The notes under the pieces are model-generated. The model had not been told where the DNA came from, did not search any database, and saw nothing but the letters and a program-made list of their open reading frames with translations. From the NCBI GenBank assembly GCA_965112735.1, contig OZ218951.1, positions 4,278,001 to 4,342,000 on the forward strand: a stretch of 64,000 bases of DNA, given 5' to 3'. Below are positions 67 to 7,036 of the stretch, one piece after another; position 1 is the first letter of the stretch; each line of letters opens with the position of its first letter. A program made the position numbers and the translations under genes. The DNA comes from Phaeosaccion multiseriatum. Taxonomy: Eukaryota > Protista > Ochrophyta, other classes.

Positions 67-348
67 CTAATACTTTGGATTTTCCAAAGTCCACTTTGCC
101 AACCACTCCTTTTCGTTCGCTTCTGGACCCCACCACTCGTTCTTCTTGGGAAATCGTCCGTGTCTCGCCATCATTTCGGGCTTGGTCATGCCGCCGCGCT
201 TGGCCAGATTTTTGGCCCGCGACAGCTTGTGCTTCCACGTCGAACGATAGGAATAGTCCTTCTTCTTTGGCTTGGGTTGTTTGGTACTCACACCGGCTTT
301 TGTTGCTTTCGTCGCTTTGGCCACTCCCGTTGTCTTTGGCTTTGCCAT
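67..348 (-). CDS. Small basic hypothetical protein (93 aa, Lys-rich)
   Basis: ATG at 348 opens MAKPKTTGVAKATKATKAG...LENPKY*. Composition is protein-like and non-repetitive, but I recognise no domain. It lies 80 bp outside the left TIR. Confidence 0.35.
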   Translation of the reverse strand: MAKPKTTGVAKATKATKAGVSTKQPKPKKKDYSYRSTWKHKLSRAKNLAKRGGMTKPEMMARHGRFPKKNEWWGPEANEKEWLAKWTLENPKY

Positions 349-428
349 TAGGGGAGGCTGGATTTTTCTACCCTGGGTAGTTGGACTACTTCGCCATCTG
401 TGATCGCCTCTTCCCTTTTGAATTTGAC

Positions 429-660
429 CGTCAAGGGGCATCGGGTGCCGTCCGCTGGCCATCCAAAAAGTCGTTACGTTTCTGGGACGTCCCGTCGGGG
501 ACGTCCGGTGGACGTCCCTGAGAACAGTGGTGTGAGGGGGCCGTTCGAAAATACGGACGTCTTCCGTACGTCCGCATTTGTGGTGGACGTCCCGGGGACG
601 TCCACCATGTCCGGCACGCACCCCGGACGTCCACTGGCTGCGCGTGCTGGGGACGTGCAC
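429..660. repeat. Left TIR plus subterminal GGACGTCC array
   Basis: Exact GGACGTCC at 485, 499, 510, 585, 596 and 625; variants at 555, 566 and 651. Confidence 0.9.
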
Positions 661-759
661 TGGGCCTTGCCGTGCCGTGTACGTGTGTGTGGGGGGACGG
701 GGGGGACGGGGGGGACGGTGAAGGTGTGCTCGTATACCACAGGTAGGGGCGCAAGCTCG

Positions 760-2620
760 GCGTGGAATGTGCCATGACTTAGGTGTGGACTAGAAGAATT
801 GATATTAGTATGCATTTCAGTAGACTGCTTGCGAGGCGGAAGGCTCTGTCTACTACTTCCGTTCCAATGAGTGTTGCGCCTTCTGGGGGAAGGGCTGCGG
901 TACCGTTCGGACGGTCGCCGCTGCCTCTTGCTCTCCGCGGTCTTGGGGCCCGACTTGACCTTGTAATATGGCATTTCGGTGGGGTCGGTCTTGTCGAAGA
1001 AGAAGGAGTCCTGCTTGTAAAGTCGCCACCGAGTATTGACGGAATGGCTCTCCTCTTCTCGTTCCTCCACCTCCTCAGCGAAGGACAAATCCCAGTACCC
1101 GTCCAGCGTATCGCTGAGTTCGTAGTTGCTGCGGTGCCTGCTGCACTTGTTCAGATCGGCCGCGCGCAACAGTTGCCAGACCTTCCTTCTCGAGCCAGTT
1201 ATACCACGGGCGGCAGACCTCGCAGTCCCACCTGGGAAGCTCGCGCCGCTCCTCCTTGTTGCGCACCACTTCTCCTTCCCTTTCCCCATTTCTGCCGTAT
1301 TAGCCCGCTTGTGCTCCACCTCCTTCCTCCTGCTGCTGCTCGCCCATCCTCTTCCTTCCTCTCGTGTTGGGGCCGGGGCGTTTGGGGGTAGGAGAAGGGG
1401 GGGGTGTCCGGGTTTGGTTCATCATCTCCTCTGAGACGAGCCCGCCTCTCCTGTGGTTCATGCGCTTCTCCCGCGACGCCTCCCCGCTCCTCGCTGGTCT
1501 GTGTGCCTTTCTGCCTATCCCCCTAGTGCTGGTTCTCTCCCCTCTCCCTCTTCCTGGCCGGCGAAGCTCCCCTTGTGCTGAGTCTCTCCCCTCTCCCTCT
1601 TCCTGGCCGGCGAAGCTTTGGTCTTGCCCCCCTTGACCGATGCGCTCTCGTTAACGGAGGCCTCTTCGTCCTCCACGAAGTCGTCATCCTCCGTATCCGA
1701 ATCCGACTCCTCCGCCTCCTCCCCCACCGCCTGCTGCTGCAGCTCCTTTCCGCTCCCTCGTTCCTTCACCGGCGTCTCGCTTTGCTTCGGCGTCATCTCC
1801 TTTCCGACATCAACTCTGAGGGTGGTAGGTGGAGGCCTGCGTTGCCCCTCCTTCGTCCCGCCGGGTGGCCGGGCTCCGTCACCACCCCCTGTCGCTCTCC
1901 CTGTCCAACGCGGACGTCCCAGGTCTTCGCTCTCCCCGCCGTCGGTCTACTCTCCTACTCCATCTTCTTCGTCTTCAGTCGGAGACGAAGGTGTCGCGAG
2001 GGGGGCGGGGGGGGGCGACAGTACGTGGGATCTGCCCCCGGAGTTGGTGGGTGTTCGGCCCCCCCGGAGTGCACTTGGATCAGTATCGGGCAGCTCCGTG
2101 GCTCCGAATTCGTCACACGGATGATATGTGTTATAGTGGTCTTCCATGCGCGGGGTCCCTTGCGCTAGGACATCGTCGGCCTCTCCCTCCTCGTCTCCTC
2201 TCAGCTCCGCCCCCCCCCTCCTCGTCTCCACTCAGGTCCGTCCCCTCCTCCTCATCGCTCTCGCTCCGCTCTGCGTCCTCCCCGCTCGATTCCCCCTCCT
2301 CTCCATCCGAAAAAATGGTCATCGAATCTTCGGCAAAATAGGATACCCATTGGTTCTCGCTTCATCCTTGCAGGGGGGGGGGCTCGGTCGCGAGGGAGAG
2401 TGGGCTTGGAGATGGCTTCTTCGACACCTGCTCCGTCGGATCTGATAAGCGAGTTCTCCCACACACCGCCATCCCCGTATACATCAGGTCGGCGTCAGCC
2501 TCCGTCGAGTGGTTCCTGATGGTGTATATACACGCTGCCCAACGGCAGGACGAACATGTCTGCAGTGTACGCGTTAAATCAGTGCGCTCACTCGACGTCG
2601 AAAAACGTCTCTTAGCGTCC
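760..2620 (-). pseudogene. Frameshifted CtIP/Sae2/COM1-like gene (acidic disordered region plus C-terminal SAE2 domain) inside the TIR element
   Basis: About 1272-1060 reads EVVRNKEERRELPRWDCEVCRPWY, then after a frame change LNKCSRHRSNYELSDTLDGYWDLSF. This matches the CtIP C-terminal signature VVRxKxER-L-CxxC-Y / CSRHR / TPxxFW-F. The upstream D/E/S-rich pieces are split over several frames. Outer boundaries are approximate. Confidence 0.7.
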
Positions 2621-3429
2621 AAGGGGTGGGCCGGAAGGAACTACACGTACAGGTGCGCATGCGCGGGGGCGGGAGGTGCCGGGCATGGGGGGGGGGGGGG
2701 CCGGAGTTGGGTGGGTACGTCATGTTCAGCTCGTTCGTCTCCTCATTCGGTCTGTCTCACGTGCCCTTCCCTTCCCCTGACCTACTTACATCCACTGATC
2801 CGGGTTGATGTGCGAGCACATACAAGCATCGCGACTGGGTGACTCGGCGCCGATTCTGATATAGCTCTTGGTAAAACTGTGGCGTTCGCGCGAGAAGGGG
2901 GGGGGGGGGGCGGGTGGAGGTCCTTTGAGCAAGAGGCAGGTGGCTAGGTACGGAGGTGGCGTTCATGGAAGCGACATTAGGGGCGGGGAAATTATGTACT
3001 CATCCCTCAAACTCACCATCATCGTCGCTCATGGTGATGAAAGGAAGCAGGAAAAGTATGAAGGATGTAGGAATGACGGCCGAAGTGGCGGTTGAGGTTT
3101 TACTCTTAGAAACCGTTACTCTTTTTTTTTGCCCGTAATCATCAACGGCGAAAGGCACATATACAGGGACTGGATGTAAGCAGCACAAATGGAGAGGTAG
3201 GATAGAGGGCGAAGAGGGAGGGCCAGGTGATGGTGGTGGGTGATGGGAAGAGGCATGTTTGATGCGGGGAGCCGAGTAGGCAGCAGCCGATACTGCGGGG
3301 GAGGGGCGGCATGATGGACACGCGCATGAGAAAGCTGGTATACGGAGGAGAGGGGATGGGTTGGAGAGCGGGGGCGCGGCGACATGACATAGCGGGTAGG
3401 GGCAGATCGGTACGGACGGGAGGGGGGGG

Positions 3430-4640
3430 GGGGGGGGGGTAAGCAGAGGGATAAGAGGAGGAAGGGTGATGGGGGAGAGGCGAGAGTGTCATGGAGAGAA
3501 AGGTGATGAGGGAAGAGTGGATGGTCTGAGTGCGGGAGGAGGCAGGAAGCGGGAGCGATGGAGGACTTGGGACGACAGAGGGAACAGGGGCGGGTGGGCG
3601 GATTTGAGAGAAGCAGGGGCCAGGTGTGGTGGGCGACGGAGAGGGGAAGGGATGGTCGGAGAGAGAGAGGGATGGAGGGCGAAGACGATGAGTAGCATTG
3701 ACAGTGGGGAGAGGGAGGGAGAGGGTGTGTGGAGACGCGTTGTCTGCCTGCCGTCATATTCATGCAGGAGGCGAGTGTCCAAAACTGACCTCCTCCTCGC
3801 CCACCCCCGCACCCTCCCTCCCCCGCCTGTCCCTGCACTCCCTTCCCACGCTGAAACCGCAGGCCAGCCGCTGATGGCCGTCATCGACCTTGCCCGTCCC
3901 AGAGCAAGAGGTGAGCAGGCTGGACGGAGTAGCCGGGCTGGGCGAAGAGGGAGGGGAATGGGGGGGGGGGTGGGGAGGCCCAAAATTAGGTACAAGAGGA
4001 GGGAGGGTAATGATGGGAGAGTTTATGGTCTGCGGACGAGAGGGGGCAGGGAGTGCGAAAGTGAGAGGGCCTGCGATGAAAGAGGGTGCACGGGCGGGAG
4101 GGTTGTTTGGGGAGAAGTATAGCACAGGCATGGTGAATGATGGACGTACGGAGGGATGGTTGGGGAGAGAGAGCGGAGAGAGAAGGGCAGGGGGGCAAGG
4201 ACCAGCAGCATAGAGTGGAGAGAAAGGGAGTAGGAGAGTGCGCGGAGAAGCGACACCTCCCGGCCGTAATGTTTTAACAGAAGGTGCCCACGAATAACAC
4301 CTCCTCCCCACACACCCTCCCTCCCCCGTCTGTCCTTGCGCCCCAATCCACACCGAGGCCACAGACGCTGGCGGCGGACATAGACTCCACCCGTCCATGA
4401 GCAAGAGGTGAGCACATTCGACGGAATAGCTGGGCGGGATGGGGAGCGAAAGTCGAACAGGGAGGCAGCAAAAGGAGGGTGGACGGACGAGGCAGGGCTC
4501 CAAGACGAAAGAGGGCGCCTCCGGGCTGGATGGAGAAAAGGGTAGAGAGAGGGGTTCGGAGGAGGGACAGTAGAGCGACGTGTATGGAGGGTGTGTGGAT
4601 TTGAGACAAGGGACATGGGGGGGGGGGGGGGGGTAAGAAG
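3430..4640. repeat. Diverged ~500-bp tandem duplication (two copies plus a partial third) inside the TIR element
   Basis: GAGCAAGAGGTGAGCA at 3902 and 4399. Blocks 3790-3940 and 4300-4440 align, as do 3640-3740 and 4150-4250. Confidence 0.7.
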
Positions 4641-5199
4641 TGACTGACGCGGCGAAGCTGACCCAACGGCTATGACGACACAACCATAGACGAATGAGTA
4701 TCCACTAACACCCCCCCCCCCCATCCGGCTGCACAACGAACCCCGCCTCAGCAGAGCATAGCTTGGCGTGGTATGAGGAGGGAGAGGCGACAACAGAGAG
4801 GAGACGAGTGAACACCCACGGAATGAAGCAGAGAAAGTGGCGCGGAGACGTATGTCGAAATGAAGGAAGGGAGACAAGAGGCGGCTTGTCAAACCCCTGA
4901 CGTGGGTCCGACGCATTTCCAGTAGCATAACTACCGGGCCCGCAGGGCCCAGTAACACGCCACTGGCCGCCGGCTGGTAGCAGGTAGCACGTCGGCTGAA
5001 GCCGGCTCGTATTCTAGCAGATAGCACGCCGGGTGGAAGCAGCCGGCGATACTAACAGGTAGTATAGTCTCGGCCCGGTACTGTCCCAGGGACGTACACA
5101 ACCGCTGTGTATTTTTTTTTTAAAGTCAATGTATTATCCAAACCCAACCAAACACCGCGCCCGCTGTTCTCGGCTTCACGCCCCTCCGCCACCCGGCTC

Positions 5200-5445
5200 A
5201 CACGCACGTCCCTGGGACGTCCACTTGCGCCCGTGCGGGGGACGTCCACACGCGTTCTCGGCCAAAGCACGACCCGTCTAATGTACGCGCCTCGGACGGG
5301 CGCCGCTCGGACGTCCCGGGAACGTCCGAACGTCCCGGAACGTCCTTGGGTTTTTGGACGTTCCGAGTACGCCTCTTACCATGGCGTCCCAGAAACGTAA
5401 CGACTTTTTGGATGGCCAGGGGACGGCACCCGATGCCCCTTGACG
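5200..5445. repeat. Right subterminal GGACGTCC/GAACGTCC array plus TIR
   Basis: Exact GGACGTCC at 5215, 5240 and 5309; GAACGTCC three times at about 5320-5345; TIR at 5385-5445. Confidence 0.9.
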
Positions 5446-5620
5446 ACGTCACGCACGCAGCCACGGGCACAAAAGATACCTCGGGATTGGGCTTCTACGG
5501 ACTCTTTCTCTCCCCTCCTTTGGGAGCCCTTTGGCGCCCCTGGACCCATACCGAGGAACGTAGGGTGGGAACTGTGCCACCATCTGCTACCTTGCTCAAA
5601 ACCTCCCCCCTTCCCATTCA

Positions 5621-7036
5621 ATGCAGAGGACCTTCAGCACTGAGGTAGGACAGTTCTCTATCTCTTTATTCCTCAGTGGCCCTCAGCTCAGCCCCCCTCC
5701 CCTCCGGTTTTAGGCTACCCGTCTTGCCCAAGCCATCACCAGTGGCCAGAGCGTCCAAAGGGTGCAAGCGGCTGTGAGGGCCCTCGTCGCAAGGAACGGA
5801 GGAAGGAAGGCATGCTTGGACGAGCCCCTCGACGTGGACGGGAATCCCGCCTTAGTCTCAGCTTTGAAGACACGGAGGGGCGACATCATTGCTCTCTTGC
5901 TACAAGAGGGGGCGTCGCCCAACGCTCGGGAGCCTTTAGAGGGCATGACTGTGTTGAGCATTGCATCCTCTGGGCTAAATGCTGATATCGTACAACACCT
6001 TCTTTCTGCTGGTGCGGAGGTCGATGGGAGAATGAGACATTATGACGCTACGGCTCTTATGATGGCCTCCCAGGCAGGGAACGTTCTGGTGGTGCACAAG
6101 CTGCTGTCCGCTGGTGCCAGCGTGGACTTGGCTGACAGTGATGGCGCTACGGCGTTGCTCATGTCATCAATGAAGGGCCATCATGCAGTGGTGCAGCAGC
6201 TGTTATCGGCTGGCGCTAATCCTAACCACGTAGACGTGCACCGTCGCACCTGCTTGTTGGCGGCCGCAAGTAACGGACGTGACAGAGTAATAGAGCTGCT
6301 GCTCAGATCGGGGGCAGATGCTAATATGGCAAACGGCAATGAACGGTTTCCGGTTTTTATGGCGAGCCAAAGTGGTCATGGCACTGTGGTGGAGCAGCTC
6401 ATTGCAGCCGGTGCTGACCTCGGAAGGCGGAATGGGCCGGAGAGATGCACTGCGTTGATCGCAGCGTCTGCCAATGGACACCGAAGCGTTGTGCGGAAGC
6501 TGCTGAGGGCTAAGGTGGAGGTGAATGCGATGAGTGGCGATGGGGTTGGAGCGATACACTCGGCATCTCAGGAAGGCCATGCTCGCGTCGTGGAGGAGCT
6601 CATCTCAGGAGGTGCTGACGTCGAGACGCCGAATGCTCAAGGTTTTACAGCTTTGTTGCTGGCTGCTGTTCGGGGGCGTGGGGCAGTGATCCGTCTGCTG
6701 CTGTCTGCAGGGGCTGATCCTGACAGGGAGAACAGTGTCCATGTTGGAACGCCTTTGTATTTCGCAGCAGGAGAGGGCCACAGCGGGGCGGCGCTGGAGC
6801 TGCTCTCAGGAGGGGCCTCACTGGCAAAGGCCCTGACTCAGGCCCGAGGCCAGCGCGATGAAGCCAGTATTGTAGAATTCCTCCTGGCAGCGGACAGACA
6901 GCACTTTGCGTCACAAAGCGCGTTGGACCTGATGCGGGGCACTGACCTTCTCTTTAGCAAGGAAGGGAGGTTGAAGGTGTCGCAGAGAGAGGTTAGCCCT
7001 GAGGGGCTGCAGGAGGTGGCGGAGGGGATGGCATGA
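5621..7036 (+). CDS. Ankyrin-repeat protein, paralog A (2 exons: 5621-5644, 5714-7036)
   Basis: About 10 ANK repeats (e.g. GATALLMSSMKGHHAVVQQLLSAGANPN). A 24-nt first exon MQRTFSTE and a GT-AG intron join in frame; paralog B has the same structure. Confidence 0.9.

Follow-up and report, generated by a model that had tools for sequence, protein, structure and literature searches.

Gene-fragment capture by terminal inverted repeat (TIR) elements is well described in plants, where it is known from Pack-MULE and Pack-CACTA elements and as transduplication (PMC8903248, PMC6379663). Here, we analyzed a stretch of 64,000 nucleotides from Phaeosaccion multiseriatum (contig OZ218951.1, positions 4,278,001 to 4,342,000), hereafter the window, in which positions 429 to 5445 are a non-autonomous cut-and-paste TIR DNA transposon, one of four full copies, carrying a piece of a CtIP/Sae2-type gene. 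The element most likely took up a portion of a CtIP-type gene, which has been decaying as a passenger ever since, in the manner of Pack-TYPE elements. Like these, it is a non-autonomous TIR element with a target-site duplication (TSD) and no transposase, its copies lie at unrelated sites, its cargo is a truncated and degenerate fragment of a cellular gene, and an intact relative of that gene is present elsewhere. However, the described Pack-TYPE elements come from land plants and have MULE or CACTA ends with TSDs of 9–11 bp or 3 bp, whereas the element presented here resides in an algal-type genome and combines a 2-bp TSD with 61-nt TIRs and a CtIP cargo. Among the papers listed by full-text literature searches joining CtIP or Sae2 with transposon terms, none contained CtIP or Sae2, and we found no paper describing a CtIP fragment as cargo.

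The boundaries of the element are sharply defined. Inverted-repeat matching identified a left TIR at 429–489 (plus strand) and a right TIR at 5385–5445 (minus strand), each of 61 nt and 98% complementary to one another (60/61). The dinucleotide AC at 427–428 is repeated at 5446–5447, immediately outside the right TIR, and forms the TSD. To define the family, the genome (67 Mb in 22 contigs) was searched with three queries: the leftmost 272 nt, the terminal 25 nt with up to three mismatches allowed, and a paired palindromic motif, GGACGTCC. Three further full copies were found, at C2:4262097-4267192 (hereafter C2b), C11:487077-492192, and C3:1906350-1911472. All eight termini of the four copies agree in their outermost 25 nt, and the flanks are unrelated apart from the dinucleotide repeat of each copy (AC, TT, CA, and CC for the set of four); four such matches would arise by chance with a probability of about (1/16)^4. 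The C2 sibling is inverted and lies just 11 kb from the window copy, as would be expected of a cut-and-paste element that hops locally.

The window contains 11 occurrences of the palindrome GGACGTCC, where 1.5 are expected, and nine of these sites fall at 485–632 and 5215–5316, just inside both ends. The left subterminal cluster (485–632) comprises six palindromes, and the right cluster (5203–5340) contains the palindrome together with near-variants. Throughout the genome, 24 places have two GGACGTCC motifs no more than 30 nt apart, whereas the control gave 5, and 23 of the 24 lie within members or fragments of this TIR family. These arrays are putative transposase-binding sites. CACTA-type elements of the CMC group (CACTA/Mirage/Chapaev) have short TSDs and subterminal arrays of short repeats, and the 2-bp TSD and subterminal arrays of the present element recall that group. 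However, its termini begin with CGTCAAGG rather than CACTA, and no transposase is tied to such ends in the assembly.

Could rearrangement or segmental duplication instead have left the inverted repeats and their copies, with the CtIP piece as an ordinary dispersed pseudogene? The element interior does also occur without TIRs, both in a repeat of more than 10 kb present in four copies and at an older locus described below. Against this stand four copies, spread over three contigs, whose ends are sharp and identical and whose flanks are unrelated, each copy having a 2-bp duplication of its own, as well as subterminal motif arrays typical of TIR elements, so that we consider an origin other than transposition extremely improbable. 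The preliminary description of this DNA had recognized 61-bp TIRs enclosing an element with no visible transposase, and both observations hold: the arms match at 60 of 61 positions, the 2-bp TSD and three more full copies accompany them, and Pfam found no transposase family among the 17 open reading frames (ORFs) of the element. It had also called for a genome search with the TIR, which yielded the additional copies but no autonomous partner. The 25-nt terminus occurs exactly or nearly exactly 11 times in the whole genome, accounted for by the four copies and three solo ends; six additional truncated ends are present, and the whole-genome searches for a partner with matching termini returned only this TIR family.

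The cargo is encoded on the minus strand between 1077 and 1272, where CxxC, CSRHR, and GYWDLSF, the motifs that mark the C-terminal domain of SAE2/CtIP, follow one another in canonical order. The first half of the domain (1272–1180) reads EVVRNKEERRELPRWDCEVC...WLEKEG and includes the EVVRNKEERRELPRWD-CEVC segment; the motif EVVRNKEERR..WDCEVC spans 1272–1213, WDCEVC itself lies at 1230–1213, and the two cysteine codons are at 1224–1222 and 1215–1213. The second half (1172–1077) lies in another frame and reads LLRAADLNKCSRHR...TLDGYWDLSFA; here, LLRAADLNK precedes CSRHR (1145–1131), followed by T-L-D-GYWDLSF at 1109–1080, with GYWDLSF at 1100–1080. When searched separately with PF08573, whose gathering cut-off is 19.8 bits, the two frameshifted pieces each scored below the cut-off: the ORF at 1075–1269 reached 14.3 bits over profile positions 6–39, and the ORF at 474–1319 reached 19.4 bits over positions 78–105. 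In the six-frame genome scan, the locus scored 20.7 bits. Thus, the motifs noted in the preliminary description (CxxC, CSRHR, and T-x-x-G-Y-W-x-x-x-F) are all present, and the profile search it proposed gives a borderline match. The likeness to the CtIP/Sae2/Ctp1/Com1 family lies in the three motifs, with GYW-x-x-SF as the last, their order, and the profile positions covered; unlike members of that family, the element copy is frameshifted, has a stop upstream of the domain and an unrelated tail, and lacks the N-terminal coiled-coil/tetramerization region.

The reading frame through the domain is broken in two ways. Alignment places a 1-nt insertion at 1173–1179 (minus strand), between EKEG and CSRHR, relative to the intact gene, to a pseudogene on contig C9, and to an older element copy (L062). 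In addition, translation reveals a TAA stop at 1300–1302 (minus strand) in the frame of the domain, just upstream of it and beside the junction of an internal deletion. The 1-nt insertion is also present in four other copies, L058–L061, which makes five copies in all; it is therefore inherited and not an assembly error, and contigs of public sequencing runs show no indel at the site. Of the two frameshifts suspected earlier near 1170 and 1272, the first is thereby confirmed, while the second is the junction of that internal deletion, which removed about 140 codons compared with the intact gene just upstream of EVVRNK. Beyond the junction, the upstream part of the captured fragment (1267–1512, minus strand) is 78–81% identical to the C9 CtIP pseudogene and corresponds approximately to residues 300–357 of the intact gene. 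At the other end, an element-specific tail (885–1076, minus strand) can be read on in the same frame past the CtIP domain. Nothing in the intact CtIP-like gene corresponds to this tail, which is common to L062 and partly shared with the C3/C11/C2b subfamily.

The intact relative is an uninterrupted single-exon ORF at C1:597316-599058 (L055:3317-5059), which encodes a protein of 580 aa with a coiled-coil-like N terminus, a long low-complexity poly-E/poly-Q middle, and, at the C terminus, an SAE2 domain (32.8 bits). Among the five hits of the six-frame PF08573 scan, this is the only intact SAE2-domain gene found, and it is probably the working CtIP of the cell. A hit at C5:2016812 was rejected as a further gene, having no motifs and consisting of low-complexity noise. 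The C9 hit was likewise rejected as a pseudogene with many stops; it is located at C9:1358741-1359646 (L056 4242-5147) and represents the C-terminal half of the C1 gene, residues ~273–580, interrupted by stops and shifts of frame. In its upstream part, it resembles the fragment in the element more closely than the C1 gene does. The intact 580-aa protein had no exact match in the protein collection, and a PDB sequence search with it returned low-complexity noise only.

Comparison of the window copy with the C1 gene defines the extent of the fragment. The two share 75% nucleotide identity over 216 nt, and at the protein level the 1180–1272 piece is 57% identical to residues 499–529 and the 1077–1172 piece 62% identical to residues 532–563. 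With the C9 pseudogene as an intermediate, the element can be followed collinearly with the C1 gene back to about residue 300 and no further, and homology ceases directly after DLSFA, 17 codons short of the C1 stop codon. A tblastn search of the window with the intact 580-aa protein matched residues 499–563 only and detected no N-terminal coiled-coil region. Because the homology is partial, ends inside the coding sequence, and does not include the N-terminal coiled coil, the CtIP cargo is a gene fragment; it is a pseudogene piece and not a gene.

The other TIR-bounded copies reveal how little the element depends on this cargo. C2b, C11, and C3 are 98–99% identical to one another, which makes them the most recently multiplied copies. 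In all three, the segment corresponding to window positions 967–1263, which contains the entire SAE2 core, is swapped for 35 bp while the ends remain perfect, and these copies show neither an SAE2 profile match nor a tblastn match. The SAE2 domain is therefore carried by only one of the four TIR-bounded copies, the window copy, where it is frameshifted. Since the youngest TIR-bounded copies are without the SAE2 core and have intact termini, mobility is independent of the CtIP piece in cis.

Copies of the interior that lack TIRs tell of the same decay, each with its own distinct lesions. L058–L061 are four TIR-less copies within the repeat of more than 10 kb, whose copies are 94–97% alike (L058 is C7:3661500-3671499); in L058, the piece at 4624–6850 is a TIR-less, internally deleted part of the interior of the window element. 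In these copies, the first cysteine of CxxC is a serine, and a CTG repeat takes the place of all sequence beyond CSRH. L062 (C1:3.806 Mb) is an older copy of about 65% identity. It is in frame at the site of the window frameshift, and it has lost CxxC, carries a 17-nt deletion of its own, and contains no TIRs and no GGACGTCC motif. Another fragment is located at C4:3076240. As a separate observation, an ORF at L058:1109-1603 (minus strand) ends in what looks by eye like an OTU-type protease, with no Pfam match.

Substitutions among the copies were then compared by codon position. Differences between the window copy and L062 number 16, 15, and 20 at the three positions, and those between the window copy and the C1 gene 16, 14, and 23; the profile is flat, without bias. 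Against the L058 family, four of four substitutions in the frame of the domain are non-synonymous, including the cysteine-to-serine change in CxxC. An intact element-borne CtIP copy was sought in the assembly by the six-frame PF08573 scan and by a protein-level scan with the element-type C terminus; none was detected, and the latter scan returned no further copy. Likewise, a word search of a large protein collection with this C terminus, covering proteins of 155–490 aa, found no relatives.

These results bear directly on a functional explanation, in which an ancestral autonomous element encoded a working protein with the CtIP C-terminal domain, of which only dead derivatives survive, and this protein biased excision-site repair or modulated MRN. 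Such an extinct accessory gene would account for the sharing of the fragment by diverged lineages (the window copy, the L058–L061 family, and L062), for the retention of all motifs in the window copy, and for the slight third-position excess relative to the intact C1 gene. The old L062 copy, moreover, adjoins a multi-ORF gene that could be a candidate transposase. However, neither an intact copy nor an autonomous partner was found in the assembly, where the exact termini number just 11 and the paired motif led only to the family itself; the fragment lacks the N-terminal oligomerization region and ends inside the donor-type coding sequence; the codon-position profile is flat among element copies, with the changes between the closest copies all non-synonymous; L062 has neither TIRs nor GGACGTCC; and the element-type C terminus has no protein relatives in the word search of proteins of 155–490 aa. 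We therefore regard an extinct accessory gene as unlikely, and the stronger version, in which the protein of the extinct autonomous transposon was a true accessory factor for the repair of its own excision sites and the window copy is its best-preserved fossil, as quite unlikely. The preliminary description had advanced CtIP as an accessory gene steering excision-site repair or MRN and had proposed a test for intact copies under selection. No such copy was found, and the accessory role is not supported: the fragment is frameshifted, deleted in the youngest copies, and devoid of an N terminus, and an intact CtIP-like gene is present at another locus, C1:597316-599058. Neutral decay in all copies, which that description had equated with passive Pack-type capture, is what we observed.

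The gene adjoining L062 deserves a brief description of its own. At L062 5953-8932 (C1:3807452-3810431, minus strand), four long ORFs stand in a row and probably constitute one multi-exon gene, convergent with the old copy of the CtIP-bearing interior. A second copy of this gene, 91–95% identical and inverted, is present at C1:3701905-3705611. Neither Pfam nor an ESM Atlas feature search gave a match for it.

Several observations weigh against passive capture and decay. The window copy keeps every diagnostic motif at about 27% nucleotide divergence from the C1 gene, with a slight, non-significant excess of third-position changes relative to that gene (23 versus 14–16). At least three diverged repeat lineages (65–95% identity) contain the fragment, which has therefore traveled together with this sequence for a long time. 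Furthermore, of all interior blocks, the 160 bp at 1128–1287 that hold the first half of the domain are the best conserved between the window copy and the L058 family, at 95% identity compared with 75–85% elsewhere; because this block includes the shared frameshift, we tentatively attribute its high identity to gene conversion or a mosaic origin. It is the motif retention and this block that leave the extinct accessory gene standing as an unlikely alternative.

A different role for the fragment would be regulatory. By analogy with Pack-type elements, for which such effects have been proposed for some captured plant fragments (PMC8903248; bioRxiv 10.1101/777037), transcription of the element might yield small or antisense RNA directed at the CtIP-like gene of the host, to which the fragment is 75% identical over 216 nt. 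That analogy is the only general argument for it, and no sequence feature speaks in its favor: few perfect 21–24-mers are left at 75% identity, and the stretch occurs in no run recorded as RNA, the runs being contigs whose kind is unknown or perhaps DNA. We judge a regulatory by-product of this sort to be very unlikely.

The evidence is best accommodated by passive capture as follows. In the past, an ancestor of the window copy would have acquired a segment from the 3' half of a gene of the CtIP/Sae2 type; both the identity of the donor gene and the date of this event are inferred. The captured piece would have come without the N-terminal coiled coil and 17 codons short of the donor-type stop. 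It would then have drifted as a pseudogene, gaining the internal deletion, the stop, and the 1-nt frameshift within the SAE2 domain, and the lineage with the most recent transposition would have lost the whole SAE2 core by deletion. A transposase supplied in trans, which would recognize the termini and the GGACGTCC repeats, would move the element or have moved it formerly; the CtIP piece takes no part in this movement.

The locus thus appears to be a further instance in which a DNA transposon has captured and dispersed part of a host gene, here beyond the land plants and with a cargo that is unusual. It also documents a small orphan TIR family (61-nt TIR, 2-bp TSD, GGACGTCC arrays) that annotators would otherwise miss, and it indicates that SAE2-domain hits at this locus and its relics are to be annotated as pseudogenes rather than as additional CtIP genes. 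An intact element-borne CtIP in a relative would make the finding matter far more; nothing here suggests that one exists.

In the remainder of the element, an acidic, Ser-rich low-complexity stretch with several stops and frame changes (1513–2700, minus strand) is 79–85% identical to the other copies and contains a 49-bp tandem duplication at 1520–1617. It is followed by a purine-rich, non-coding interior (2701–5100), in which a repeat search identified tracts of poly-G as well as degenerate direct repeats with a spacing of about 500 bp. Pfam detected no family in the ORFs of either segment. The C3/C11/C2b subfamily carries a 305-nt insert that is absent from the window copy at position 4319. 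An ORF within this insert (L019 ~4380-4469 in the C3 copy, with the same ORF in L017 and L018) begins with MEPISMEYVETAHQAADILT and, by eye, resembles the C-terminal end of a copia-type pol, with no Pfam match.

In the window, the element is inserted between two divergent genes, at 67–350 (minus strand) and 5762–7036 (plus strand), and may therefore disturb their shared promoter region. The former encodes a small basic protein without a Pfam family, and its ATG is about 80 bp downstream of the element; the latter, an ankyrin-repeat ORF, has the element about 300 bp upstream of it.

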